NCBI GenBank assembly: GCA_965644295.1
Contig: CBFFRP010000358.1
Location: 1 to 64,000 of the forward strand
Length of the DNA stretch: 64,000 nucleotides
Origin: Paraphysomonas bandaiensis
Lineage: Eukaryota; Protista; Chrysophyceae
Direction of reading: 5' to 3'
The stretch's first letter is position 1. Each line of letters starts with the position of its first letter. Below, piece by piece: positions 1,607 through 64,000 of the stretch. The notes under the pieces were generated by a model, which was not told the origin of the DNA, made no database searches, and saw only the letters and a list, made by a program, of their open reading frames with translations. A program made the position numbers and the translations under genes.

Positions 1607-2326
1607 TTATTTATATCGAATCACTAATGTACAGGACCAGTGTTGACCATTTAAATCCACAATTCTACCTCTTTGATCAAGCAATCGTAAGTGTGTATTG
1701 ACTAAATTCTCAATTGAGTTAACCTGTGACATTAAATCTCCTTGATAGTAAATGACGCTATTTGGAGGAACCGAGTTTTGAATGCTGCAAAGGTAACATG
1801 CGTTCCGGGTATCGTTGCTTGATAAATTTTTTGTAATAAAATTGCTTGAGGTGATATGTAATGTGCGAATTGGGAATAGATTAATATTAGTATTGCTGGC
1901 AATAGTTTGATTAGTTGAGGTATAAGATTGTCCTTCGCTAAGCCCAAGCAGTTCAAAGCATGTAGATGTTGTGTATAATGTAAATTCATAATTTGCATGG
2001 GTGATGGTGTATGTATTTGTTGTGGATTGATAAGTAAAGATTAACCCTGTATTGTTTTGGAGAACTGTTTTTAAAGTGCTCACATTATAATTTCCTTGAG
2101 GAATGGTGAATTGTTGAATTCCACCACTGTTAATCTCATATACTAACAGCTGATTAATATTATCTACATTATAGAAACTTGTAGGTATTTCCGCGGATTT
2201 TACCCCTACTGTTAATTCAGTAATTTGCTTAGGTAGGTCTATCCTTGGTAGGTGAAAGATTACATCGCTCGTGTTTTGATTGATTTGTAAACTGGCATCT
2301 CGGGAGTTTAAAAATACTTGAATCAT
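1607..2326 (-). CDS. Putative minor capsid protein (penton, single jelly-roll)
   Basis: 239 aa, beta-strand-rich; N-terminal VFLNSRD, IPxSFYNV, IPQGNY and C-terminal LRLLDQRGRIVDLNGQHWS motifs typical of PLV/Polinton/NCLDV minor capsids; adjacent to the packaging ATPase. Confidence 0.7.
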   Translation of the reverse strand: MIQVFLNSRDASLQINQNTSDVIFHLPRIDLPKQITELTVGVKSAEIPTSFYNVDNINQLLVYEINSGGIQQFTIPQGNYNVSTLKTVLQNNTGLIFTYQSTTNTYTITHANYEFTLYTTSTCFELLGLSEGQSYTSTNQTIASNTNINLFPIRTLHITSSNFITKNLSSNDTRNACYLCSIQNSVPPNSVIYYQGDLMSQVNSIENLVNTHLRLLDQRGRIVDLNGQHWSCTLVIRYK

Positions 2327-2456
2327 TGCTTATTACTCTTGATAAAATGTTTTCGAGGATCATTTCGAATCCGGGGATATGGTCATATTCACACCCTCCG
2401 AGTCTTTTATTTATTTCATTTATATCGATAAGTAGATGGTAATCATAATGTTCCAT
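2229..2456 (-). CDS. Small hypothetical viral ORF
   Basis: ATG in AT-rich context fills the ATPase-penton gap, but the 3' part overlaps the penton ORF. Confidence 0.3.
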   Translation of the reverse strand: MEHYDYHLLIDINEINKRLGGCEYDHIPGFEMILENILSRVISNDSSIFKLPRCQFTNQSKHERCNLSPTKDRPT

Positions 2457-2469
2457 TTATAATATGGAA

Positions 2470-3195
2470 TTATTTTATTTGAAGCTGGTTAAAGTTTTTA
2501 TAAAATATGTTAGATACAATATCGATATCTAGATGATTATATGCTCGATCAAATACGTAATTATATAACTCAATTGCGTGATCTTTTTTCATACGGAGTA
2601 ACTCTTCGGATACCAGCTCAACTTCCTTGCGGTTTCTAAACTGGAATATTGTGACATTAGTTAACATTTTACGTAGTGTTAATTCAAATAGGTTGTAAGA
2701 CTGAAGAGTAAATATAGTTGATAAACCAATGTGTCTTGATTTTACGATGATTTTCTTTAATAGTGTAACTATTTGTTTATCTTTCAAATCATTAGCAAAG
2801 TCATCTATGATTAATAGAGAATTCTCAACAGGTAATTTATTTTCAATGCTATGTTTTTTAAATAAAGCAACTTCATCATATATATCTATTAATACCCCAT
2901 CTGTAAGCTCATGGTATTTTTTATCGTGGTTTTCAAAGGGGTGGTCCTTCACAGATAAATAACTTGATTCTGGGGAAATAAAGTAAATGTTGTCAAATTT
3001 TCCTCTGTAGTACTTGCTTGATCTAAATAATGAGAGTAGGAGGGAAGATTTACCTGAACCGGGTGCACCGATTAAAGCATATACAAACCCATTGCGGTTT
3101 GGAAGGTTAGGGTGGATATTTGGGATAAATATAGACATTGCTTCTTTCACAGGTTGGATATTAGGTAAATTACTTGGTTGCTCTGTTATGTGCAT
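2470..3195 (-). CDS. A32-like (FtsK-HerA) DNA packaging ATPase
   Basis: Walker A GAPGSGKS, Walker B LLIIDD, A32-specific SRH..STIFTLQ motif, C-terminal YNHLDID; 241 aa. Confidence 0.9.
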   Translation of the reverse strand: MHITEQPSNLPNIQPVKEAMSIFIPNIHPNLPNRNGFVYALIGAPGSGKSSLLLSLFRSSKYYRGKFDNIYFISPESSYLSVKDHPFENHDKKYHELTDGVLIDIYDEVALFKKHSIENKLPVENSLLIIDDFANDLKDKQIVTLLKKIIVKSRHIGLSTIFTLQSYNLFELTLRKMLTNVTIFQFRNRKEVELVSEELLRMKKDHAIELYNYVFDRAYNHLDIDIVSNIFYKNFNQLQIK

Positions 3196-3226
3196 TTTAT
3201 CTTACTTATCCTAATTATTTTTATTT

Positions 3227-4306
3227 TTAGGATTTATTTTTAGGAGGTCTACCTCTTCCTCTTTTTGGTGGTGGTGGTGGAGGTGGTGGTAAAAGTGGAG
3301 TTTTCGGGGATTTTGATTTTTCACTCTGTGGAGATTGTGTAATGTTTGAATCATCAAATTCCTCTATTGCTTTATGACTTTTTGGTTCTCTTTTTGTTTC
3401 TGTATTTTCTACCACTTTCTTTTTTGATTTAAATGCTGGTAATTCTTGATATTCCTCCTCGGTTATTGGAGCAGTACGCCTTGTTCGTTGTACCTTTGGT
3501 ACTGTTCTTAATCCCTTCGGTGCTTGATAATCTTCATCAGGTAATGATTCACTGCTATCTGTTGATAATGTATCAATCAACTCGCTGTGGCTATATTCTT
3601 TGCTTTGAGGAGTTTGTGGAGCTGCCGCTGTTAACGTAGAGTGTACATTTGATTGTTCTTCATTCATCTGCATGAACCGCTCACTTTCAGGTGTAAATGG
3701 TAATTCTCCTCCACCCATCTGCATAAAACGTTCGCGTTCTGGTGTGTATGGTGTTTTTAGACCTTCTTCTTGTGGTTTAATTGGTGATGGCTCTGTGAAC
3801 GTAACATGTGGTTCAGAGATATCAAATGCTTTTCGTCGTTTTGGTTTTGGTTTTGTTTCAGTCTGAACTAAACCTGTTACTAGATTTCCAGCTGTACTCA
3901 TTCGTGATTTCACTTTATTTTGATCAATCGCATTTGCAACGTGATAAGCAATAGCTTCGTTTCTCTCGTTCCAATCTCTTTTTGTTGGATTTGGTGTTTC
4001 CGATTGTGTGGAAGGCTTTGAGTTTTGTAAAAGTTCTAACTTTGCTTGAAGTAGTCCATCGTTCAACTTTTGTGTTTCTGCTTTGTTTCCTAATCCAAAC
4101 AATGGGTTTGTTGAAACATTACCCTGAAGTGGTTTGTTTGATTTCTCTTGAGGGATAAATAATCCTCTATCATCCTTTTTCTTTCTCCTGGCAGCTTTCT
4201 TTTTCCGACGTGCTCGTAGTTTATTTTGTATACGCTTTTTATCAATTCCGTATAATTTCACCAAATCATCGAGATCTAAATATATTTTATTTTTTGTTTT
4301 TCCCAT
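3227..4306 (-). CDS. Disordered basic viral protein with C-terminal AT-hook
   Basis: 359 aa; basic tract RARRKKKAARRKKK, duplicated TPExERFMQM motif, poly-Pro followed by PKRGRGRPPK. Confidence 0.75.
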   Translation of the reverse strand: MGKTKNKIYLDLDDLVKLYGIDKKRIQNKLRARRKKKAARRKKKDDRGLFIPQEKSNKPLQGNVSTNPLFGLGNKAETQKLNDGLLQAKLELLQNSKPSTQSETPNPTKRDWNERNEAIAYHVANAIDQNKVKSRMSTAGNLVTGLVQTETKPKPKRRKAFDISEPHVTFTEPSPIKPQEEGLKTPYTPERERFMQMGGGELPFTPESERFMQMNEEQSNVHSTLTAAAPQTPQSKEYSHSELIDTLSTDSSESLPDEDYQAPKGLRTVPKVQRTRRTAPITEEEYQELPAFKSKKKVVENTETKREPKSHKAIEEFDDSNITQSPQSEKSKSPKTPLLPPPPPPPPKRGRGRPPKNKS

Positions 4307-4317
4307 TCTTTATTTTA

Positions 4318-4836
4318 CTAACGAAAGAAATTATCGTATGTTTGAAATCGCTCTTTTCGAACTCTTGCTCTGTTATTCGATTGTCGCTTTGGTCCTCGTT
4401 TATAGTGTTGGTATTCTTCGTCATCGTAGTCATCTGCGTTATCCGATTCCTCATCAGTTTCACTGGATTCACTTTCCGATTCTTCCACAACAATCCGTGC
4501 TTTTGGTCTTTGTTTCTTTTTCCTGACAACTATATATTGTTCATCGGGGGTTTCTTCCTCGTCCGATGGAATTAACTTTGTAGTCACCATAGGTGTTTTA
4601 ACCTTTTTCTTTTTTAGTTGTTGATTTTCTTGTTGAATCAAGAGTTTTGAAGCCTCTATCATCTTTTCTTTTTTCTTTGCCTCAATAGATGCTATTCTCT
4701 TCTCACGAACTTTTTGAAATGCTTTCATCTGTGCTTCACTTCGGGGTTTTTTAGGTTTAGTGAGAGGAGTTTGAATTTCCGGGGTATTTTCTTCGATGGG
4801 AGCTTCGATTTGTTCGTTATCGTAAGTATCGGACAT
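4318..4836 (-). CDS. Charged hypothetical viral protein
   Basis: First ATG at 4836; KPKKPRSEAQMKAFQKVREKR basic helix, then acidic tracts. Confidence 0.7.
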   Translation of the reverse strand: MSDTYDNEQIEAPIEENTPEIQTPLTKPKKPRSEAQMKAFQKVREKRIASIEAKKKEKMIEASKLLIQQENQQLKKKKVKTPMVTTKLIPSDEEETPDEQYIVVRKKKQRPKARIVVEESESESSETDEESDNADDYDDEEYQHYKRGPKRQSNNRARVRKERFQTYDNFFR

Positions 4837-4912
4837 GTCTTTTAATAATACCAAGAAAATAATTTGGTTGGAAATTTAATAATCTAAAATTTTTATGTTG
4901 ATTATAATAAAC

Positions 4913-5446
4913 ATGCATCGTCAACCACCCGCACCACCAAAAGAATCAAAACCTGAAGTATACAATGAAATGAAAACACCGAGTATTATTTCAACCAGCG
5001 AAAACCCTTTTAAGTATCAACCTGTACCTGAAGTGAGTCTTTACGGTGCTAAACTTAAAGCTGATCATTTGTCCAAGAAAAACATACTGTTTACTAATGA
5101 AGCTAACCAATTTGTAAATGCTGTTCAGGATGCCCTTTCCAAATTTGATAAAAACTCGAATAGGTATAGCGAGGATATTTTGCTCTTTTGTATGTCTGCA
5201 TGTGAAAATGCAATCCTCGGTAAAAAACAGGGTGAATTAAAATTACAAATGGTAAAAGCTTGTGTGAAACCATTTTTCAATAATGATGAATTACTAATTG
5301 AGAAATGGGTCTCGCTTCTTATGCCTAAAATTCTTAATTATAAATTCTGGAATCGTAACTTACGTAAGATCGCTAGATTTTTTTTAAACTGTGTTTCGAT
5401 GAAGCAACAAGCACCATCACCCGACACGCAATCAAAGTTTCTGTAA
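4913..5446 (+). CDS. Hypothetical viral protein, divergent orientation
   Basis: Intronless ORF in the same AT-rich block; ATG at 4913 (alternative 4895). Confidence 0.65.
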   Translation: MHRQPPAPPKESKPEVYNEMKTPSIISTSENPFKYQPVPEVSLYGAKLKADHLSKKNILFTNEANQFVNAVQDALSKFDKNSNRYSEDILLFCMSACENAILGKKQGELKLQMVKACVKPFFNNDELLIEKWVSLLMPKILNYKFWNRNLRKIARFFLNCVSMKQQAPSPDTQSKFL

Positions 5447-7335: not shown

Positions 7336-9575
7336 TAAATCCAGCCAATATATAAAACGGCTGCGGAACAACTCATTCGATTAGGATTAGGGTTAAGCCT
7401 CTAATAATCTTTGGGGTGCCATTGATATATCTCCTACTACATTTGGTATAGTGTAAGCCAATCTTAAACTTAAACTTACCAGAACACTTAAACTAGCCGA
7501 CGAGGCTTTTGACAGATCTTTAAGTTACTTTAAGACTTTTAAAGTTGTCAAACATAAGTGTCCTCTTTTATATAGTCGCTGAGGATTTGTGTATGGCAAA
7601 AACAATAAAAAGTGCAGAACAACCCTCTCAACAAACCCCCAACGACCATAGAGAAGAGGATACTTATGTTTGACAGACTGCTTGTTAAAAAGGAACATTT
7701 TGTAGAAAATGCCTCTCCAGAAGCAAGGCATTGACTTATGCTAGTCGAAACGCTAATAAACTCGGCTAGACAGCTGGTGAATGGGGTATGGGAGCAATTG
7801 AGAAGATGTATCGTAGGCTACTTCTGCTCTGCCGTTTAATCAAAATTGATGCTACACAATATAACTACCGTGTGAAAACTTGTAGTATAACTCAGAGTAG
7901 GCAACTATTTTTTGTGCAATCATAATAATAATAATCATAATTCTAAGTTGCCATAACTTTAAGAATTAGGTGTTACTATGAATTGATTATTTGTTACCAT
8001 CCGGCACAAAGTTACTCAGTGCCAACATCAACATCATGTTTGTGACGTTGTTCCTCACGCTCCTCTCTTTAAATGCGGAATTCGGCTTCTTGTGGACTCC
8101 ATGTCCTGTGAAATTGGGAGTTTGCAATTGTACTCCAACGTCTGGTCCTCCCATCCGTCCAAAGTATAATTAATCACGTAATGTATGTTATTGCACATAC
8201 CCATGCCTAGAGGCAGCCTAGTCTCTCTTCTACAAGAGACAGCAGACTGATTCTGCGCCTACAAATTCCAGAGGCGACGTTTCATGCACTCAACATTTTC
8301 AGTTGCGGCACGCAAGTACTTCATGCGGCGGTAAAGTCTTGCTCGCTTCCGCTGCCTGCTACTATCTATTTATTATAATTAAGGTTACTCCGTCCGCGTT
8401 TACGACTAAATTATTAAAAGCAGCGTTATGGTTGAGGGCGTGAATGGAACTGATAACTGTTACTATATCTTCGCATCTGCTATTGAACAGCGGTAAGGAA
8501 TTCTTCCAGTATATATGCGTTTATATACAACACGATTAAGTTGCGTGTTTATGCCGTATCACACACTCCTGTCTTCGGCATAATATGTCTCCTGTAATAT
8601 GCGCTAGACTCTTCAATGTGGTGTTCACAGCAGCTGGTAGTCTGGATTGGAGTATAGAGTAGTAGCTCTGTAGCTGTATTGTTGGTAACCTCAAGGAGAA
8701 GACCGAAGGTGCATATGGCTCGGCAGGAGACGAGGGAGAAGCGGGATCAAAGAAGGGGAATAGGAAGTGTTCTATCCGGAAGATGCCATAGTAAGAGTGT
8801 CATCTGAGAGTGGTATCAGCTCTGTAGCATTCGGATGTATGTGTATGTTCGTGTGTTGTGATTCACACAACAATGATCACCTCATCCGATAAACCATACC
8901 TCTTGAGCACTCCTCGCTGTCATTAACAATGTCTTACTTAACATTGTATCTGTGGCGTGAAATGGTTCTGTGATGATTATATGTTGCTGCAATGTGTGTT
9001 ATCTCGTTGAGCGGTGTGAATACATTATAGATATTATTTTTATACTACAATGTGTGTCAAACGATAAGCTGAGTGAATACTCAGTATGCTCATGTTGCAC
9101 CGCTGATATACCTGACTTCTACTGACATTCTTGAGTTCTTAATGTGAACATACCGAATTTTTAACTCGAATGCAATACTCCGGTTGCTCTTTTGGTGCGC
9201 CGTGTCCCGGATGACCACCCAAGCATGAAAAATGTGTATCCAATATTGATAGTTTATAACTGCATTAGAACAGACAGAACGTACACTCAATAATAGATTG
9301 TGATAACTATATTGTCATTTTCACGAAATTTATTCTCTCAACTTCCCAATCAATTTCATACGATTGTAGTTAGTAGCGATCTTACAGACTCAGAAACTTA
9401 CCAGCTCACATCTATCCTGTAAAGATAGGTGGCCGTTCTTTTTTGCTGTTCACGCTGCAAACACTGTATTGGGATTGCAAAAACTGAAGTGCAAAAAACA
9501 TCAGCGCCCCTTCGTTGAAAAAGTCTGTAATAGATTTCTGTGGAATGCAAGTACGATTGAAGATGCTATACGTGC

Positions 9576-38602: not shown

Positions 38603-41088
38603 TTACTTGGACGACGAATCCGACATAGGATTGACAAGATTCTTCTTGAGGGGTAGGTCTCTCTGAATATATCCCAAGATGGCCTCATAATCAGTCTTCA
38701 AGTACCGATCATCATCCATGCGTGGTGACATGCTCGCACAGTCAACAAACATTCTGCTCAGCTCCTTGGGAATCATAAAGTTCGGTTTGTTGCTGAACCG
38801 AGTGTGGAGGGCATGTGTAGTCATCAGCAACTCAATGGCTAACATTTTCTGTACATTTTCCACAACCTACCACGTAGTTTACGTTATAAACAGTTTCGTC
38901 GAAAGAGTAGAAATATATGGGAATTACAAATTTTATATATCGGCCATATACTCTACAATGAATATTGCTACAAACCTGAACAGCCTTTCTCGCCGAAAAG
39001 CCCCCCATACTGACATGATCCTCCTTCCCAGCTCCTGTGAGGATAAATACAAATATCAACCAAGCAAATGATTAGAAAAAGTGGTACGTAGGAGAAGCAG
39101 GAGCTAAAACTAAAAAAGCAGATGCCGACTCACGTCATACAAACAGCACCAATAAACATAACCGCTATGCTACCAACACAGCTATATACAGTTACTATAT
39201 ATTACCAGAATAAAGTAACATTCACTAATACATACCTGTATTGGCCGTCTCGGCGGAAGCTGGCATAGAGAGAGTCCTGTTCTCAGCATCCAATGCCGCC
39301 TGTGCAGAGTGCAATGTTGAGAGGCTTTGTGCAAGCGTATATAGTACACAATGTACAGGAAGTATCTATCCACACATGTCAGGTGCGCGCTACTTACAGC
39401 TGTCAGTTCCCAGCACATAAACCCCGAGTTGACCCCTGGATTGTTGACTACAAAGGCTGGTAGACCTATAAGTGCATACTAAGGATTGTTAGGTCATCTT
39501 TTAAAACAACGATACCTCTATTTCTATTGGGATCAATCATTAACATACTTCTTGCAACACTAGCTCGGCCCAGTTCTCCGACATACAGAGCCAAGGTATC
39601 CAGAGCCTTCGCTGGGTACTCTCCGTGGAAGTTGCCAGCTGATATGATGCAAGGTAGCTCCGTGTTAGTAATTGGGCACAGGGCAGGGTCAAATATAAGT
39701 GGGTTATCAGTACTGGAGTTCATTTCCGTTTCCAAAGTGTGACGAATAGAAACCAGAGACTCTAGGACTGTTCCATGGATTTGAGGAACACATCTTAACA
39801 TATGATTATCAGCAAAGCGTAACCTGAGAGTGCAAGACACTACCTCAGCGAATAGAAGTCTTGTACATCCTTATCGGTTGTCGTGTGAGAGTTGGGGGGT
39901 ACGAGGCCCCTCACAATTCTCGCCACAGTGGCGGATCCAACATGTGGGCGACATTCGTGGACTCTCGCATCAAAAGCATTCATGTGGCCATTCAGGGCCA
40001 CCAAAGTCAAGGCAGCGATTGGTTGGGCAACCTATACATTCAACACGGCAGTTCCACAGAGGAATAATACATTGAGATAGTTAGATAAACAAATATGAAA
40101 TGACAGTTATAGTACCTGCGCACATATGATTCCTGCCTCCAATGCTTGAGAGCCGACACCTGTGATGAATTGGGTGCCATTTACCAAAGAAAGTCCATCC
40201 TTGGCAACAAATTTGGCGGGTTCGAGGTTGTACTCTCGTAAAACGGAGGGTGCCGGCTCAAATGCATTAGTACGAGGATTATGAATTAGTCCCTCGCCAC
40301 TCAATCCAAGGGCGATGTGAGCAAGGGGAGCCAAATCACCTACATATAATGCTGTCACGACATACAGAACTAAGGATTTCCAACATTTACGTCTGGATGA
40401 CATATTACTACCAATATCTATATTCCTTTTTTACTTCATTATGCAGACATCATTCCAATACGTTCACAAATATACTACACCAATCACATCGCTCATTTAT
40501 ACCTGACGCCCCAACTGTGCCTTGACTCGGGACTTCAGGCGTGCATCCTGTGTTAAACAAATCCACGAGTTTTTTAAATGTATCCAAGCTTACGCCACTC
40601 TTTCCTCTAGCTAGAGTATTTATACGCAAAGCCATTATTCTGCGGACAACAGATGGATGCAAAGGCTCCCCAACCCCTGATGCATGGGAACGAATTAAGT
40701 TGTGCTGTAAATCGCACAACTGAGAGTAGGAAACATTGGTGTGTGACATCAGTCCAAACCCTGTATTGATACCATATGTCGGAACCTTTGATTCAACAAT
40801 TCGGTCTACTATATCTCTTGACTGCTGAAGTCTCTGAATGGTTTCAGGAGATATGGAGAGCGGAGTACCATCTCCTAACGCAATGAGTTTCTCTATAGTC
40901 ATGGAGTTCCCGTCTACATCAATAGAGGACGAAGATTTCATTTCGTTGGGAAAAAAATTCAAAACATTTGACTGAATCATGCTCGAAATCATATCAGAAT
41001 AAGAAGACTGAGTGGCTTTAGAGACACAAAAGCTGCGCCAGGCCTTTCCCATTACTCCCCCCACCCTCTTGCTGCATCGAAACGACAT
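38603..41088 (-). CDS. HAL: Histidine ammonia-lyase, 8 exons, N-terminal mitochondrial-presequence-like extension
   Basis: YGINTGFG; His-specific LQHNLIRSH; MIO triad GTVGASG|DLAPL; NGTQ; QDFYSLRCVPQ; TDNP; GNFHG; EDHVSMG. Exons 41088-40503, 40339-40116, 40031-39844, 39793-39516, 39465-39398, 39299-39236, 39034-38976, 38866-38603. Confidence 0.95.
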
Positions 41089-41713
41089 GCTATCAAAAAT
41101 CCTCAAAAGTGTATCAAAAGTGTATCAAAATTATTTAGACGCAAAAACGACAGCTAGGAATTCTTACAAAGCTTCCTGAATAGCAGTGTAACAGTAATGA
41201 TTAATCGGTGTAGGAATAGTGACTTCAGGTGGCTGATTTTGTTGGATGTGGACACTTTAACACCTAAAAGATCCCAACAAATATCAGCCTCATATGTAAA
41301 ATACAGTGTGATACGAACTTGGAATACACAGTATGCACCATAAATCTAGAATAAATATGTTCCCACTCCTTGTCTTTGTCTATGCAGCTATGCAGGGTTA
41401 AATACATGACGTATACCACACCTTATACAGTGTAGTTGGATAGATACACACATCTCAGCTACCATATACACATATACACGTATACATGACTGAAGGAGAA
41501 CGTCATATCCAGACCAAGAATATACAGCACAGTACTGTACAGTATACTGCTCACATCTTCTACGATCGGAGTGGGTGTTCACTTTAATCTGCTCTCCAGA
41601 ATTAAGTTCCAAATCGTGATTAGCATAATTACCACACGGGATAACTGCTCTCTCCTACCCACCCTAAGAACTCTGTTTAGTGGCCACCCATTCAATTATT
41701 CATAGGTTGCAAC
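41089..41713. promoter_or_regulatory. Putative bidirectional promoter shared by HAL and HutI-HutU
   Basis: 625 bp between divergent ATGs of consecutive pathway genes; contains tandem CAAAAGTGTAT near HAL. Confidence 0.55.
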
Positions 41714-44700
41714 ATGCTGCGAAATATTCGTGTGAGCTCTGTGAAAAAGCTGCGCTGCATGCCCCTCTCCTCTATGAGGGTCGTTAATATAGGGGCTGGT
41801 GGGTACTCTTCACCTCATATTACCTCGCATCTTGTTGTTAATTTATGTAACAGTGGTAACGCCCTCAAGAGATGGCTCTACTATTGAAACTCATAAAAAC
41901 AAGGATCTTCTTATCGTTGACGGTAAGATGGCCGGCATCACTCCCTCACAGTCTACTTATTCGGAGCCTGTCTTCGACGCCAGTGGATGTCTTGCAACAC
42001 CTGGCTTTGTAGACGCCCATACTCATTTGTTTCCACCGAACGACAGAGCAGAAGAATTTGTCATTAGGTATTCCGATTACATTACACTTGTGTTGACATC
42101 ATGTGCATTGTTTTGCACGTAACATTGTGTTAAATAAATGCATCAGCATAATATTTCTTTTATTGTGAAATATAGGTCCGTGAAGTCTTATTTAGAGATA
42201 GCCAAAGAGGGTGGTGGCATTCTGTCTACTGTGAGAAGCTTCAGAAACGCGACTGTTGAACAAATTGTTGAAGCCAACAGACCCTTGATGGAACAGTTTT
42301 TTGCCCAAGGTACGCCACGCGTATGTTCACAAATTAGTTATAATAGAGGAACATGATAGTTATATCGTTAGTGTTATTGTGTAACTTACAACATCCCTGC
42401 TCAGTTGTTGTATATAAATTAATATCATGCAGTGAGTAGTAATAGTCAGAATAATATGATATCTCATTGTAAATATGGCATATATGTTCTTAAGCTAACC
42501 ATGACTGTTTATGTAGGGACAACAACAGTTGAGGTTAAGTCTGGGTATGGTCTTACCACAGCTGATGAGGTGAAGTCTCTTAAAGCTATTCAAATCCTTC
42601 AGAAAGAGTTTTCTGATAAACTCACAATAGTTCCAACCTTTATGGGTGCTCATGCTGTGCCGCCTGAATACAAGGGGAGAACAGACGAATACGTTGATTT
42701 AGTATGCAATGAAATGATTCCCGAAGTGGCGAAATTAAAACTCGCAACCTATTGTGATGTATTCTGCGAAGAAGGATATTTCAATGCCACACAAACCACC
42801 AAAGTAATATATCCTCGCTGTGTACGCTGTTGGGGTGTTTCGTCTGCATTGTGTGGAAATTTTAGCATGAATATGATTCTGCGTCATGTGGTATTCAAGA
42901 TTGCCGCAAAGAATATGCAGCATTCGTCGTTTCTTTCTCTAAATGAATTATATAACAGATTCTGGAAGCAGCTAAGGCTCATGGGATGTTGACCAGACTG
43001 CACGCTGATGAGTTCAAAGACAGTAAAGGAGCTGCTACGGCTGCGCGCATGGGATCTCACTCCGCTGATCATCTAATGGCAGTAACGGATGAAGGTACCT
43101 TATTGTGCAGTGGTTTATGTTCTCATGCAGGGCATTGGGTATGTGTGTGCTCGAGTATAGTGTACTTTGAGAAGTGATGTTGACACAAATAACAAGTTAT
43201 GTGTTGTAGGCATCGCTGCAATGAGAGATGCTGGAGTGATTCCAATCGTCTTACCTGGTGCAACTGTTTTCTTGGGAAAGGTGTTCTCCTTATTCGCTAG
43301 TTTATGGTGCTGATATTGCTTGCCATTCCTGCAGGGACATGGGTATGCTCCTATGCGGCGTATACTGGATGCTGGTGGAAGGCTAGCTATGGCTACTGAC
43401 CATAACCCTGGTTCTTCCGTACATCAGAGTATGGCGCAAATGATGCAGCTGTGTATTGCAAACGGTGGTATAACACTCTCTGAGGTATATATGTAGATAT
43501 ATATATCCTGATGTAGCTATTGGGTTGACGTCGAGCGATGTGTCTTGATAGGCTTTGATGGGAGCTACATACAATCCAGCCCTATCCCTAAACCTTAAAG
43601 ACAAAGTTGGAAGCCTGCAGGTAACTAAACATACGGTTTTAGTTGACTTTCAGTGTGTGCATGGCCTGTACAAAATGATTGTGACATTGGAGTCCTCATT
43701 GGTGATGTTGTTCACATTACGCAGGAGGGCGCGCAGGCTGACATCATTCTCTGGAACTTTGAAAGCGCATCTCAGATTCCGTATTATGGCGGCGAGAGCA
43801 GACACCGAATAGATACCGTATTTAAACATGGAAAAGCTTTCCGCAACCCTCTTCAGAACCTTTCTTGTTTACATTCGACCTCGTTTCACTCATTAAAGCC
43901 GTTACGCTCTAATGCGAGACAGTATTCTACCACCGCCAGTCGCAACCAAGAAATAGTTCTAGGAACTGTGCGAGATGTTGTATCGACAATGACTCACGAT
44001 GTCAAACTGAATGCGTCCGGGCAAATCACGGAGTGTCCGACTGAGCCAGTGAAGCTCGATCCTAGCGTTCCTCACGCACCGAAGCGATTGACACGATTAA
44101 ATGCAGAGGAGAGAGAGCTGGCCATTACGAATGCATTAAAATATTTTTCTAAGGACCTTCACTCTAAAGTGAAGCCTATATGTGAATATGAGTTGGACAC
44201 TTATGGCCATGTATATTTCTATAACCTACTGCCCTCCAAACATATATGGGCGATTCCTTTTGAAGACATTCCAGCCCAGTCACTAGAGGCCAAAGCCATG
44301 ATACATATGATTCTGAATAATTTGAACCCTGATGTCGCCCAATTTCCTCAGGTTTGCCCTGTATGCTGTATTTCCCATGATATTCTATGCTTTATTGTGT
44401 ATGACGGAATAGCGGAGCTATTGTCGTCGATATATTTTCTGCATTGTGTGATAAAGTTTGTAAACAGAGTAGATGGTCATATGTATTGCTTATTATACTT
44501 TTATCCATTTTGAGTGTTATTGCATATGTACTGAATTTTGTATTTCAGGAGCTTATTACATACGGTGGTAATGGCGCGGTTTTTTCGAACTGGGCCCAAT
44601 TTCATATCACCATACGCATGCTGAGCAAAATGAAGGCCACCCAGACCCTTTGTATGAATAGTGGCCATCCTGCAGGCCTCTTTCCTAAGTTCCCAGAAGA

Positions 44701-46860
44701 CCAAACTCCTTGGGCTGTGATCAGCAACGGCAACATGATTCCCCATTACTCCACTCCAGAGCAACTAGATAGACTGTATGCACTGGGTAAGTCGTGGGTA
44801 CTTTCAGCGTCTGATTCTCTAAGATGCGGTATCTATCTGTGACACGTATTGAAAACAGTATGTGCACATATTATTCAGTGTCAAACTTATTTTGGAACGT
44901 ATATTTATATAAGCTTTGTGTTGTCGTTTCTTTGAGTAACAGTAATATTTTTTTACTAGGGGTATCGATGTATGGACAGATGACAGCAGGTAATCGATAC
45001 TTCTCTATGATGTTCATGTTACCTGTATAGTGTGGTACCTTTATTATGTACATTTGGACGATGTTGTATTGTACTTATTCAAAGATAATCTCATTGCTGC
45101 GCTATTGTTTCAGGGTCATGGATGTATATTGGACCCCAAGGGATCGTTCATGGCACCACTCTCACTGTTGCTCAAGCTGTGGCAATGCAATCGAAGTCAA
45201 AGTCTGGGGGATGCAAAGGAAAAGTTTTCGTTACTTCTGGATTGGGGGGCATGTCAGGTGATGGCGCACTATATTCGGACCGTTATTTTAGTATCGTGAT
45301 ATCTATATACGTCCTGCATATGTTATATTCTAGAATATACAGAACAATGCTTAGATCGACTTTGTCACCGATGTATATTAGGGGCTCAGCCGAAAGCCGC
45401 CACTATAAACGGTGCTGTTTGTCTGATAGCTGAAGTCGATGAGTCCGCTTTGCGTAAGCGCCACGAGCAAGGGTGGCTGAACGAGTACTACACAGACCTT
45501 AATGATGTCCTTTCACGTGCCAAGGAGGCCCAGAATAATGGCGAATCTGTCAGTATTGGTTACCTAGGCAATGTCGTTGAGTTGTGGGAAAAGCTGGCGG
45601 AGATACCTAAACAAGATCGCTGTGAAGTGGCTATCGGGAGTGATCAGACGAGTCTTCACAACCCATATAATGGTGGATACTATCCAGTGGGACTCAGCTT
45701 CGAACAAAGTAACGAGATGATGACCTCAAAACCCGAGGAGTTCAAAAAGGCTGTTCAAGCTAGTCTGCACCGCCATTTGGCTGCTATCAACAAGCTCAGA
45801 CAGAGTGATGATTTGCTCTTTTTTGACTATGGTAATGCGTTTTTACTCGAGTGTCACAGAGCTGGCTGCCAAGTAGATCCGGAAATTCCTTCTTATGTTG
45901 AATGTATTATGGGTCCTGAGTTCTTTGATTACGGTTTTGGGCCGTATAGATGGGTATGCACTAGCGGGGATATGGATGATTTGAAAGCAACTGATGCGAT
46001 TGCGGCGAATGTGTTACAATCTCAGCTAGATGATCCCATTAATAGCAAAGTCCAACCACAGCTGAAGGCAAATTTAGATTGGATTCAGGCAGCAATGCAG
46101 AACAAACTAGTAGTTGGCAGCAAGGCGCGTATTTTATACTCCGATCTGGAAGGGAGAATTGAGTGCGCGGTGAGGATGAATGACGCTGTCGGAAAGGGCG
46201 TTCTAAAGGCTCCAGTTGTTATTGGAAGGTATTTCGCTGCAGCCCGTGATGCTTATCCAACGTTGGCAGTTTTTCAGTAGCATTGTAGAACAATTGTTGT
46301 TGTTTTCGCGCATTTTGTGTGATGCAGTTATGTATTTCTAAATTGTATATGTATAGCGTATCGTATCTGAGCCTCATATTGATTTAGGGATCATCATGAT
46401 GTCAGCGGTACCGATAGCCCTTGGCGGGAAACTGCCAATATTAAAGATGGAAGTAATCTTACTGCAGACATGTCTATCCAAAACGTTATTGGAGACGCGA
46501 TGAGGTAACTGAAATTTATAGTTTTATACGTATGCAATACGTATATCGAAGCTGTTGTGTAACTATGATATGCCGCTGCCTTGCTTACAATTGCGCTGAT
46601 GTCGATCTTGTAGAGGTGCCACATGGGTGTCTCTTCACAATGGCGGGGGTACAGGATGGGGTGTTGCGTCTAATGGAGGTTTCGGACTTGTGCTAGATGG
46701 ATCTGCTCGCGCTGAGCGCAACTGCAGGAATATGATATTCTTCGATGTGGCCAATGGGCTTACTCGGCGGGCTCGTGCTGGTAACCCTAATGCGCTACAC
46801 ACTATCAAGAAGCTTGCTGACAAGTACCCTGACTTTGAGCCATTTGTTCCTGTGATTTAG
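41714..46860 (+). CDS. Imidazolonepropionase-urocanate hydratase fusion (HutI/AMDHD1 + HutU/UROC1)
   Basis: HutI motifs: PGFVDAHTH, GGGILSTV, EVKSGYGL, DVFCEEGYF, HADE, SADHL, TDHNPGSS. Exon 43725-44351 runs without a stop from ADIILW..VFKHGK into urocanase DPSVPHAPKR. Later exons carry ELITYGG, YGQMTAGSWMYIGPQG, GLGGMSGAQP, DQTSLHN, FDYGN, GRDHHDVSG and HNGGG. All introns are GT-AG and phase-compatible. Confidence 0.92.
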
Positions 46861-48080: not shown

Positions 48081-48395
48081 ATGAGAATCACCGTTATGAA
48101 GAATTTGTTCTCCGCCTCTACTCGCCGCTGGTGCAGCACGGGCGTGTCGTCTCTCCCTCGCGCTGAGGTGGAGGGTCGTGTAGCTAATGTGGTCCGCAAC
48201 CTCATCGCCGTACAGGATGTGTCTCCTGATGCCCCTTTTGTGGCTGGTATGGGTTTGGATAGAGTTCAGGTGAAGGGGCTCATTCAACAGCTCGCCGCTG
48301 AGTTCTGTGTGGATGTGCCTCACACTGAGGCCAACAGAATGATTAATGTCTCTGCTGCAACGGATTTCTTTGCCAACCACCCTAAAGCACGATAA
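48081..48395 (+). CDS. Mitochondrial acyl-carrier-protein-like protein lacking the Ppant serine
   Basis: Presequence-like N-terminus (RRWCST); ACP-fold features (EFCVDVP..EA..HPKAR); GLDRVQ in place of GLDSLD. Confidence 0.75.
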   Translation: MRITVMKNLFSASTRRWCSTGVSSLPRAEVEGRVANVVRNLIAVQDVSPDAPFVAGMGLDRVQVKGLIQQLAAEFCVDVPHTEANRMINVSAATDFFANHPKAR

Positions 48396-57890: not shown

Positions 57891-59576
57891 TTATTGGAAA
57901 ACAGAGTCACATACTGCATCACTTAGCCCTATTGTATTTAAAATCTTTGATGCTTCTCTCACTCCAGAAATATACGCACCATGAGCTGTACCCATATGAT
58001 CCAAATGGCAAGCCTCACCAGCGAAATAGAGGCCTCTCACCCCGCTCTCCGTGCTCCAGTCTTTAGTAAATATAGATGAGCTGTTAGCCGGCGGTGCACA
58101 GGAATAAGACCCTTGTGAAAATTTGTCTGACTTCCACGAAGAGTGCATACAACCGATTGCATCGGGAACAGTTACAAACACTCGTCTTAACGACTGTACA
58201 ACTTTTTCTGAAATTTCTGTGTTAGACATTTTCTCTATCGATATAGCAAACTCATCAAATATCTGGCACATTAATATTGCTTGCGAATTTCCGTACTGGT
58301 CCTTCATGGGTGGTACAAGAAATGTTGAAAACTCAGTAGGAGAGTGATCATATCTTGATAGCCCAAAGAAGTTATACCCTGATGGCCAGAATTGATAGGG
58401 AAACCAAATCCACACAAGGTTCATGACACCAAATTGAAGCTGGCATAAACGGTCTAATTGGGGAGGTCGTGGAGAAAATTCAACAGCGTTGCTCTGGAGC
58501 ACACCGATCGGAATTGTGGATATTACGTGCTCAGCTTCAAAAATAGCACCGTTGGTACATTTCACAGAAAATATATTGTGGGAGGTTTTTAATACACTTG
58601 TGACGGTATGACCCAATCGTACATCTAATGCGTACTCAGTGGCCAAATGTGATATGATTTGGTGGAATCCACCTTCCACGAGAGCTTCACCATAGTCCCC
58701 ATCACTTGGTGTACTTCCATAGTATCGCATACTAATCTTCTCGATTGATATACCAGAGTCAATTGATATGCGGTCGTAACACCAATTTAAACAACGCCGC
58801 TCCCGTTCGGTACAAGGACCAAAAGGTAGAGTGATATCTTCTGATGCGATAGTTGCTAAGCGAAATGCTTCAGACAATGGAATATCCACTTCATCCGGAA
58901 GATCCATATCAATATGCTCCGTAACCCATTTATATCGTCGAAGCATTGATTTGTAGTCATCTACCGTTATTTCCGCATATGATACACTATCCGTGCTATC
59001 GAACAAGCATACATCGCTACCTGGAAATTCGTCAGGTGAAGTGGGATGGAGATCTAACTTAAGCTCTTTGGCTACTGAATAGAGAGGGTTGACAGTACTG
59101 TCCAATCCGTGGACCCAATTTGCTCCTAACTGAATGACAACTTCTGATGGTGCTTGTGAGTACTCGTCGTCTGAGTAGACTGAAATCTCATCATCTGACG
59201 AGCTAATCAGGTTCTGAGTAAGTACTTGCTTACACACACGGCCGCCTACACGCTCTCGCCCTTCAAGAATCACAGGTGTAATGCCTGCCTTGATAAGCGT
59301 CCTGGCTGCTGCGATACCGGCAGGACCGGCGCCTATGATAACCACACATTTCGATGGTGTGGATATGTTTATGGGGCAGACAGATAGAGTTGTCGTGGTA
59401 ACACTTAACACAAAAATAATCCTCCGGTTACGCTCGTATTCTTGCTGAGCAACTATGAGAAATGAGAGTCCTACGAGCTGAGTCTGTAACAGATGTCCAC
59501 TGTGGCCACATATGGTTTCTACGCATGTACCACTCATATACGGCACTGCTGTACATATGATATACACTCTGCCCAT
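57891..59576 (-). CDS. Flavin-containing amine oxidase (polyamine oxidase/LSD1-like)
   Basis: IIGAGPAGIAAA..ILEGRERVGGRV, LGANWVHG, W..DKFSQGSYS, LYFAGEA..GTAHGAYISGVREA; true start uncertain. Confidence 0.9.
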   Translation of the reverse strand: MGRVYIICTAVPYMSGTCVETICGHSGHLLQTQLVGLSFLIVAQQEYERNRRIIFVLSVTTTTLSVCPINISTPSKCVVIIGAGPAGIAAARTLIKAGITPVILEGRERVGGRVCKQVLTQNLISSSDDEISVYSDDEYSQAPSEVVIQLGANWVHGLDSTVNPLYSVAKELKLDLHPTSPDEFPGSDVCLFDSTDSVSYAEITVDDYKSMLRRYKWVTEHIDMDLPDEVDIPLSEAFRLATIASEDITLPFGPCTERERRCLNWCYDRISIDSGISIEKISMRYYGSTPSDGDYGEALVEGGFHQIISHLATEYALDVRLGHTVTSVLKTSHNIFSVKCTNGAIFEAEHVISTIPIGVLQSNAVEFSPRPPQLDRLCQLQFGVMNLVWIWFPYQFWPSGYNFFGLSRYDHSPTEFSTFLVPPMKDQYGNSQAILMCQIFDEFAISIEKMSNTEISEKVVQSLRRVFVTVPDAIGCMHSSWKSDKFSQGSYSCAPPANSSSIFTKDWSTESGVRGLYFAGEACHLDHMGTAHGAYISGVREASKILNTIGLSDAVCDSVFQ

Positions 59577-63247: not shown

Positions 63248-64000
63248 CTACCGCTTTTTCTTATCACCAGCAACTGGCTTATTGTAGTTACTGGGATTAG
63301 GCGCGTCTTCATTTTCTCGTACGTCTTCCAACTCACCAAGAACTGTCTTACGATATGCAACCCTCATAATGGCATGAAACCAGTAGATATGCAGCACTTG
63401 GAGAACGAAGAGAGCAACAATAAAAGGACGGCAGTAAGGAATATCCATTAACATATAATGTTCGAAAATGGCAGATCGAATAACTTTAAAGGGAAAATAG
63501 TACAGGCGAGAGATAATCCATGATAGGATCAGGCCGATAAAAGCGATAGTAGACAATATCTCTTGGCCCATGTAATTCAGGATTTTCCCAGCTTCAAGAA
63601 AAATATCAGCAATATCGTGTAGTGCCAGTACAATGAGCCCTATTCGTTCGTAGTGCATGACAAAGCTGAAAAATATTAATCCGATCGTAACCACATGATG
63701 CACAGCCATCTCAACAAAATCGTTGCGGCGTGTTTCCAGAGTAAAATGACAAAATAACCCGGAGATATAGAATGCTAGCTCCCATAGATAGTAACCATTA
63801 ATGCTATACGATCGAGGGTACGGATAGTGCTGAATGCAGTCTATCGTAGAGTCCCATATACCGAGCGACCGAATGATCTCCACTGACCACAACCAGCTGA
63901 ATGTGTAGTAGATGAGTTTAAACAGACTCTCACTGGCCTTATGAGCAGTCGCCATGCGCTCTTGCTCGGTCTTATAAGGCACGATATAGTAGAATGCTCT
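63248..64000 (-). CDS. Ceramide synthase (LAG1/LAC1, TLC domain), 5' end outside the window
   Basis: RRNDFVEMAVHHVVT..HDIADIFLE Lag1 motif; multiple TM helices; C-terminal KKKR. Confidence 0.9.
   Translation of the reverse strand, partial: RAFYYIVPYKTEQERMATAHKASESLFKLIYYTFSWLWSVEIIRSLGIWDSTIDCIQHYPYPRSYSINGYYLWELAFYISGLFCHFTLETRRNDFVEMAVHHVVTIGLIFFSFVMHYERIGLIVLALHDIADIFLEAGKILNYMGQEILSTIAFIGLILSWIISRLYYFPFKVIRSAIFEHYMLMDIPYCRPFIVALFVLQVLHIYWFHAIMRVAYRKTVLGELEDVRENEDAPNPSNYNKPVAGDKKKR

Follow-up and report, generated by a model that had tools for sequence, protein, structure and literature searches.

An apparently mitochondrial histidine-catabolism gene pair with a probably cleaved HutI-HutU polyprotein in the chrysophyte Paraphysomonas bandaiensis

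The window analysed here is a 64,000-nucleotide stretch of the Paraphysomonas bandaiensis genome (positions 1 to 64,000 of contig CBFFRP010000358.1, assembly GCA_965644295.1). It carries two divergent genes for the first three enzymes of histidine catabolism: one encodes histidine ammonia-lyase (HAL), the other a single protein in which imidazolonepropionase (HutI) is fused to urocanate hydratase (HutU). The reading that we favour, with somewhat better than even confidence, is that the fusion is a polyprotein brought into the matrix of mitochondria, where it is cut into two enzymes, much like Arg5,6 of yeast. An earlier note, made from the sequence alone, had proposed a mitochondrial location for both proteins; that the fusion is probably a cleaved polyprotein goes beyond it.

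The two intron-containing genes, 625 bp apart, are confirmed by gene models, RNA contigs and the transcript-derived proteins P0347 and P0485. In the fusion gene all 14 introns, of the GT-AG type, are spliced in a single 3587-nt RNA contig from run X1. Contigs from run X2 also show 14 exon joints, and most of the introns are spliced again in contigs from two further studies. The fusion model shares 1130 of its 1131 residues with P0347. The HAL introns were checked through P0485, an MMETSP protein that shares 575 of 576 residues with the HAL model. The sequence clusters of both proteins include MMETSP1103 entries (taxid 36769, Paraphysomonas, a chrysophyte). One open reading frame and one mRNA thus encode both HutI and HutU. 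In fact, a single exon (43725-44351) holds the end of HutI, the linker and the start of HutU, which shows that the fusion is no artefact of the gene model; RNA contigs, drawn from four studies, and the MMETSP proteins likewise rule out an assembly or gene-model artefact.

The enzymes themselves are ordinary members of known families, and catalytic motifs are intact in HAL and in the fusion. P0347 scores above the NCBIfam cut-offs for both hutI (TIGR01224, 369 vs 298 bits) and hutU (TIGR01228, 427 vs 375 bits). Judged by sequence, its halves have the features that define HutI (an amidohydrolase barrel whose ligands are HxH, HADE, SADH and Asp) and HutU, whose N, Rossmann and C domains were detected with Pfam exon by exon. 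The best solved relatives are 6V6H for HAL and 6UEK for HutU, the latter at 725 bits. The best NCBIfam family of HAL is hutH, at 504 bits slightly below the 539 cut-off. HAL holds the ASG triad that forms the 4-methylideneimidazole-5-one (MIO) group, the inner-loop Tyr, the SH specificity pair and the YSLRC and EDHVSMG motifs, and annotated ciliate HALs group with it in the tree; by these features it is assigned to HutH.

The evidence for cleavage comes from the junction. A fold model of the fusion has a mean predicted local distance difference test (pLDDT) score of 87.6 and falls below 50 only at aa 1-15, aa 429-456 and four short loops. Residues 429-456 are the sole long low-confidence stretch inside the model (a single-sequence fold of the linker region, with a pLDDT of 37, was uninformative), and they lie in an acid-free stretch, aa 413-457. 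This presequence-like linker contains RQYST, the only match in 1131 residues to the published consensus RX(F/Y/I/L)(S/A)(S/T) for cleavage in which the mitochondrial processing peptidase (MPP) acts first and Icp55 second (PMC8847149). Read by this motif, MPP is predicted to cut at Q448|Y449, with Icp55 trimming to S450. The R-2 aromatic motif is conserved at the junction in homologues, although it is lost in some relatives. It is kept in six of seven related linkers, the window's included: the aligned sites are RAYSS (L001), RAYST (L002), RSFSS (P0123), RQFST (P0250) and RAFST (P0273), and P0122 deviates, its REYHS (R-x-Y-H-S) being one position off the consensus. The remainder of these linkers is on average only ~18% identical. 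When each linker is shuffled the consensus arises in 1-7% of cases (0.01-0.07 per linker), chances that are not to be simply multiplied because the seven linkers share descent. Bacterial and ciliate-like fusions have short, acidic linkers, and the presequence-like insert is therefore best read as an addition of the chrysophyte lineage.

The N-termini point in the same direction. The earlier note had described both as free of acidic residues over ~30 aa, and this holds for HAL aa 1-31 and for fusion aa 1-34, which contains 7 R/K. Both start codons are the first ATG in an RNA-covered 5' leader (contigs extend to 41250 and 41596). Basic, hydroxylated N-terminal extensions recur in the fusions of L001, L002, L007 and L170 and in the HALs of L002, L007, L170, P0378 and P0379, and several relatives' extensions end with R-x-[FLY]-[SA]. 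Where a motif-bearing locus has a visible 5' end (window, L001, L002, L007, L170), the fusion carries a basic extension in five of five cases; where such a locus has a linked HAL, that HAL does so in four of four. Basic extensions are likewise found on the HALs of Stylonychia, Halteria and the L006 group, and within this HAL clade the chrysophyte-like and ciliate members have basic, acid-poor ones. HALs of fungi, amoebozoans, trypanosomes and mites begin at the core, without an extension, and animal-core HALs lack one too. By its composition and conservation the fusion N-terminus may be a matrix presequence. We infer a mitochondrial location for both proteins. The relocation proposed earlier stands as a likely one, now well supported by comparison of the N-terminal extensions and by the internal MPP-type site.

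To explain these features we propose that steps 1-3 of histidine catabolism (His -> urocanate -> imidazolonepropionate -> formiminoglutamate) have been moved into the mitochondrial matrix. HAL would be imported by its own presequence, and HutI-HutU as one precursor of ~124 kDa with a single presequence at its N-terminus. MPP would remove the presequences and also cut the internal R447-x|Y449 site after Q448. Icp55 would then trim Tyr449, and the products released would be a ~47 kDa HutI and a ~75 kDa HutU. Paraphysomonas is a bacteria-eating marine flagellate, and histidine from digested bacteria could be converted to formiminoglutamate and, by later steps, to glutamate and so to substrate for the tricarboxylic acid cycle. 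The divergent layout would be inherited from an older cassette, in which HAL-HutG faces away from HutI-HutU. In Trypanosoma cruzi, histidine fuels respiration (PMC12203737).

Table 1. Features of the histidine-catabolism gene pair (window positions; aa, residues of the encoded protein).
Feature	Positions	Strand	Description
HAL/HutH (histidine ammonia-lyase) gene	38603..41088	-	ATG 41088, 8 exons, 576 aa, no internal stop
HAL exons	41088-40503, 40339-40116, 40031-39844, 39793-39516, 39465-39398, 39299-39236, 39034-38976, 38866-38603	-	
HAL MIO triad ASG			aa 194-196
HAL N-terminal extension	40996..41088	-	aa 1-31, acid-free, 6 R/K, R-x-F site at aa 18-20; presequence-like
Divergent intergenic region	41089..41713	.	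625 bp between ATGs; candidate shared promoter
HutI-HutU fusion gene	41714..46860	+	ATG 41714, stop ends 46860, 15 exons, 14 RNA-confirmed introns, 1131 aa
Fusion N-terminal extension	41714..41773	+	aa 1-20; pLDDT <50 at aa 1-15, folded domain from ~aa 20; presequence-like
HutI (imidazolonepropionase) domain	41774..43841	+	aa ~21-421; metal-site motifs HxH (84/86), HADE (255-258), SADH, D331
Inter-domain linker	43842..43949	+	aa 422-457, low pLDDT at 429-456; internal presequence-like
RQYST	43917..43931	+	aa 447-451; only match to the MPP/Icp55 motif
HutU (urocanate hydratase) domain	43950..46857	+	aa ~458-1131; long eukaryote/Bacteroidota type

Both elements of this proposal are of kinds already known, namely MPP-cut polyproteins and the retargeting of enzymes in stramenopiles. 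In yeast Arg5,6, MPP cuts a presequence-like linker at an internal R-2 site, RSY, and Atp25, Rsm22-Cox11 of S. pombe and a rice RPS14 fusion are further MPP-cleaved mitochondrial polyproteins (PMC8734313). Like Arg5,6, the Paraphysomonas fusion joins in a single precursor two enzymes that act one after the other in one amino-acid pathway; it has a predicted N-terminal presequence and a presequence-like linker in which an R-2/aromatic site is followed by Ser. Unlike Arg5,6, it comprises catabolic Hut enzymes, comes from a stramenopile rather than from fungi or plants, has its enzymes in reverse order to the pathway, and its cleavage is only predicted. The stramenopile mitochondrial TPI-GAPDH fusion (PMC6198282) offers a second likeness, since there too a normally cytosolic pathway segment is retargeted to mitochondria as a two-enzyme fusion. 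The pathway is a different one, and the excerpts of that paper mention neither an internal cleavage site nor a gene cluster. HAL, UROC1 and AMDHD1 of animals and HAL, UH, IP and FG of T. cruzi (6V6H, 6UEK) belong to the same enzyme families, but each is a protein of its own that lacks a presequence-like extension; they are cytosolic or, for the T. cruzi HAL, also acidocalcisomal.

Several observations weigh against a cleaved matrix polyprotein. Neither window N-terminus matches the full MPP/Icp55 motif, and HAL Met13 and fusion Met16 or Met21 could yield cytosolic forms. The seven linkers share descent. The close relatives L003 and P0121 keep F-S without the Arg, so that cleavage is probably dispensable in some species, and the short acidic linkers of the ciliate-like and bacterial fusions lack the site, so that the fusion works uncut there. 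A clade (P0124, P0271, P0272, P0350) that has neither N-terminal extension nor linker motif counts in favour of the polyprotein reading, as does the in-frame stop that lies directly upstream of the fusion ATG in L171, where the linked HAL has only a short extension, without a motif. Because both features occur in both chrysophyte-like sub-clades of the HutU tree, however, their absence looks like one joint loss, which as a single event gives no statistical correlation. Uncut-type fusions in bacteria, in the ciliate-like group and in one chrysophyte sub-clade, together with the loss of the site in L003/P0121, would suit a mitochondrial pathway in which the fusion stays a bifunctional enzyme, channelling the unstable imidazolonepropionate. 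The linker would then aid import as an internal targeting-like sequence or be a relic; internal sequences resembling mitochondrial targeting signals can indeed assist import without cleavage (PMC5881500). Import-assisting sequences need not, we infer, keep a cleavage motif, yet linkers that cannot otherwise be aligned have retained the R-2/aromatic/S/S-T motif exactly, and we consider an uncut enzyme unlikely.

We give still less weight to cytosolic or dual-localised enzymes made from the downstream ATGs (HAL M13; fusion M16/M21), with the basic N-termini being incidental. The histidine-catabolism enzymes of animals are cytosolic, one related sub-clade has no extensions, and M21 lies just where the folded domain begins. 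The T. cruzi HAL, for its part, is cytoplasmic and acidocalcisomal (PMC12203737). Against this, no ATG precedes the upstream ones in the RNA-covered leaders, relatives repeatedly show extensions with R-x-[FL]-[SA] sites but not the internal Met (fusion Met21 is L, V and L there), and a conserved MPP motif would be of no use to a cytosolic protein. The use of downstream ATGs, which the earlier note had named as a threat to its proposal, is disfavoured, though such starts could still give cytosolic forms. Least probable of all, in our judgement very improbable, is that a second, internal transcript yields a separate HutU with the linker as its presequence, the long mRNA being read-through, or that the proteins are sent to a genome-less plastid. 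In runs X5 and X9 contig depth does climb toward the 3' end. The X5 step (at 44173, from 8 to 57) falls within the coding region and fold of HutU and is probably poly(A) 3' bias, and runs X1 and X2 each give a single contig of even depth over the fusion. Moreover, the stretch from aa 362 to aa 469 has no Met inside it, therefore no start codon precedes the linker, and on this ground a separate HutU transcript with the linker as presequence is rejected. Plastid import in stramenopiles needs a hydrophobic signal peptide. Direct reading of HAL and the fusion reveals none at either N-terminus, and plastid targeting is rejected on this ground, although Paraphysomonas retains a cryptic plastid (10.64898/2026.03.27.714854).

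The layout of the pair is not a local invention. HAL and the fusion stand head-to-head in the window, in three eukaryotic relatives (L002, L007, L170) and in L006, L008 and L169; synteny across protists, a check suggested earlier, thus finds the divergent layout in other chrysophyte-like protists and in a ciliate-like lineage. Genes that are not homologous but serve one pathway have here a conserved linkage, which fits a eukaryotic metabolic gene cluster. In L006, an AT-rich and intron-less eukaryotic contig, 76 bp separate a HAL-HutG fusion from the HutI-HutU one. This arrangement of the two fusions returns in L008 and L169, among bacterial-looking genes with Shine-Dalgarno-like sites. In the ciliate-like lineage and the two marine bacterial contigs the pair covers all four steps; the layout belongs to an old cassette that Paraphysomonas has in common with both. 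In L170 a HutG-like gene lies just beyond the fusion; tblastn found no HutG or FTCD in the window, only cross-matches to HutI. The HutG-like domain (L006:497-3325; L170:13076-13861), fused to HAL in L006, L008 and L169 and a separate gene in L170, is very divergent, at 47 bits vs a TIGR01227 cut-off of 229. In L008 (2188-8930) and L169 (2-6475) both cassette genes have N-terminal extensions of ~60-80 aa, unusual among bacterial Hut enzymes and possibly relics of a eukaryotic origin.

Bacterial hut operons contain hutH, hutU, hutI and hutG or hutF. The Paraphysomonas pair resembles them in its reactions and physical clustering, and its HutI half branches beside Marinimicrobia HutI. It differs in consisting of two spliced monocistronic genes, in the fusion of HutI to HutU, and in its eukaryote-type HAL and long-type HutU. 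The term operon-like, used in the earlier note, finds no support: opposite strands and separate RNA contigs rule out a polycistronic operon, linkage is lost in L001, where HAL is not adjacent to the fusion, and L171 has the two genes tail-to-tail. Co-regulation is plausible, from a putative shared promoter in the ~345 bp left uncovered between the contig ends at 41250 (HAL) and 41596 (fusion); the RNA data are contigs only, whose depth cannot rank gene expression. No telling repeat was found in the window's spacer. In L007 a tandem array of ~31-nt units (7480-7800) fills the spacer.

Cassette copies form one clade in the HutU tree (100/100), in the HutI tree (Shimodaira-Hasegawa-like approximate likelihood ratio test 99), where they are sister to Marinimicrobia HutI, and in the HAL tree (100/100), where Amoebophrya and ciliates are included and the clade is nested among eukaryote-type HALs. 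Within it, L006 HAL joins the spirotrich ciliates with moderate support (89/91), and the bacterial HALs of L008/L169 are sister to the chrysophyte-like ones (93/94). Monophyly of all eukaryotic HALs of the clade was not rejected by the approximately unbiased (AU) test (p-AU 0.055), and the HutU tree is a polytomy as to the direction of transfer. No fused copy from a named bacterial donor appeared among the matches listed in GTDB and metagenome scans. Because its spread is patchy and its layout conserved, the old cassette has probably moved laterally, in one or more events of either direction. Tentatively, and at less than even probability, we envision a two-gene, four-enzyme cassette (HAL-HutG facing away from HutI-HutU) assembled from HAL and HutU of eukaryote type and a HutI of bacterial origin. 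Phagotrophic protists and marine bacteria would have exchanged it as one unit, and a whole pathway would in the process have passed from eukaryote to bacterium. Chrysophytes would then hold the first Hut pathway in mitochondria, and the first polyprotein cut by MPP, found for stramenopiles, living lineages representing the mitochondrial-cut, site-lost and extension-less states.

Other Hut arrangements were seen alongside. P0325 and P0328 (1774 and 1788 aa), P0327 and P0156 comprise fusions of all three enzymes (HAL-HutI-HutU) and another lineage of HutI-HutU fusions. Neither their HutU nor their HAL falls within the studied clade, and Hut enzymes were therefore fused independently at least twice. 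L005 (457-3273) has a bacterial-looking HutI-HutU fusion beside CoA-ligase genes, whose HutU joins the clade and whose divergent HutI half falls elsewhere on a long branch. P0125, a 142 aa fragment, is a urocanase N-terminus of the studied family with its own presequence-like start (KRYFTS), which suggests that an unfused mitochondrial HutU exists in some protist.

Elsewhere in the window, open reading frames without introns form a block at 1607-5446 that has the look of an endogenous virus-like element; one of them encodes an A32-type packaging ATPase (2470-3195, Pfam E 4e-11). A Fic-like frame adjoins a UBA-RING frame on the same strand (32155-33728, minus). A 104-aa frame at 48081-48395 (plus) has a presequence-like start and resembles acyl carrier protein by eye, with no Pfam match at E 0.01. 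Genes for a flavin amine oxidase (57891-59576, minus) and a TLC-domain, ceramide synthase-like protein (63248-63982, minus) are ordinary.

The earlier note knew of no described case. Our literature search, whose scope left out most subscription papers, agrees, finding none for a HutI-HutU fusion, for matrix histidine catabolism or for the cassette; papers on the Paramecium spatial proteome, Andalucia and diplonemids held nothing on Hut enzymes. If our reading is true, internal MPP processing of two-enzyme precursors extends from fungi and plants to stramenopiles, and histidine catabolism would be placed in mitochondria, for which the literature searched held no report. The comparison further documents that one pathway cassette has its gene layout in common across different domains. 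Friedl et al. ask why tandem precursors persist (PMC8734313). This family would be a natural test series for that question, with uncut bacterial and ciliate-like fusions, chrysophyte fusions that have both extension and site, and sister lineages that lack the site or both signals.

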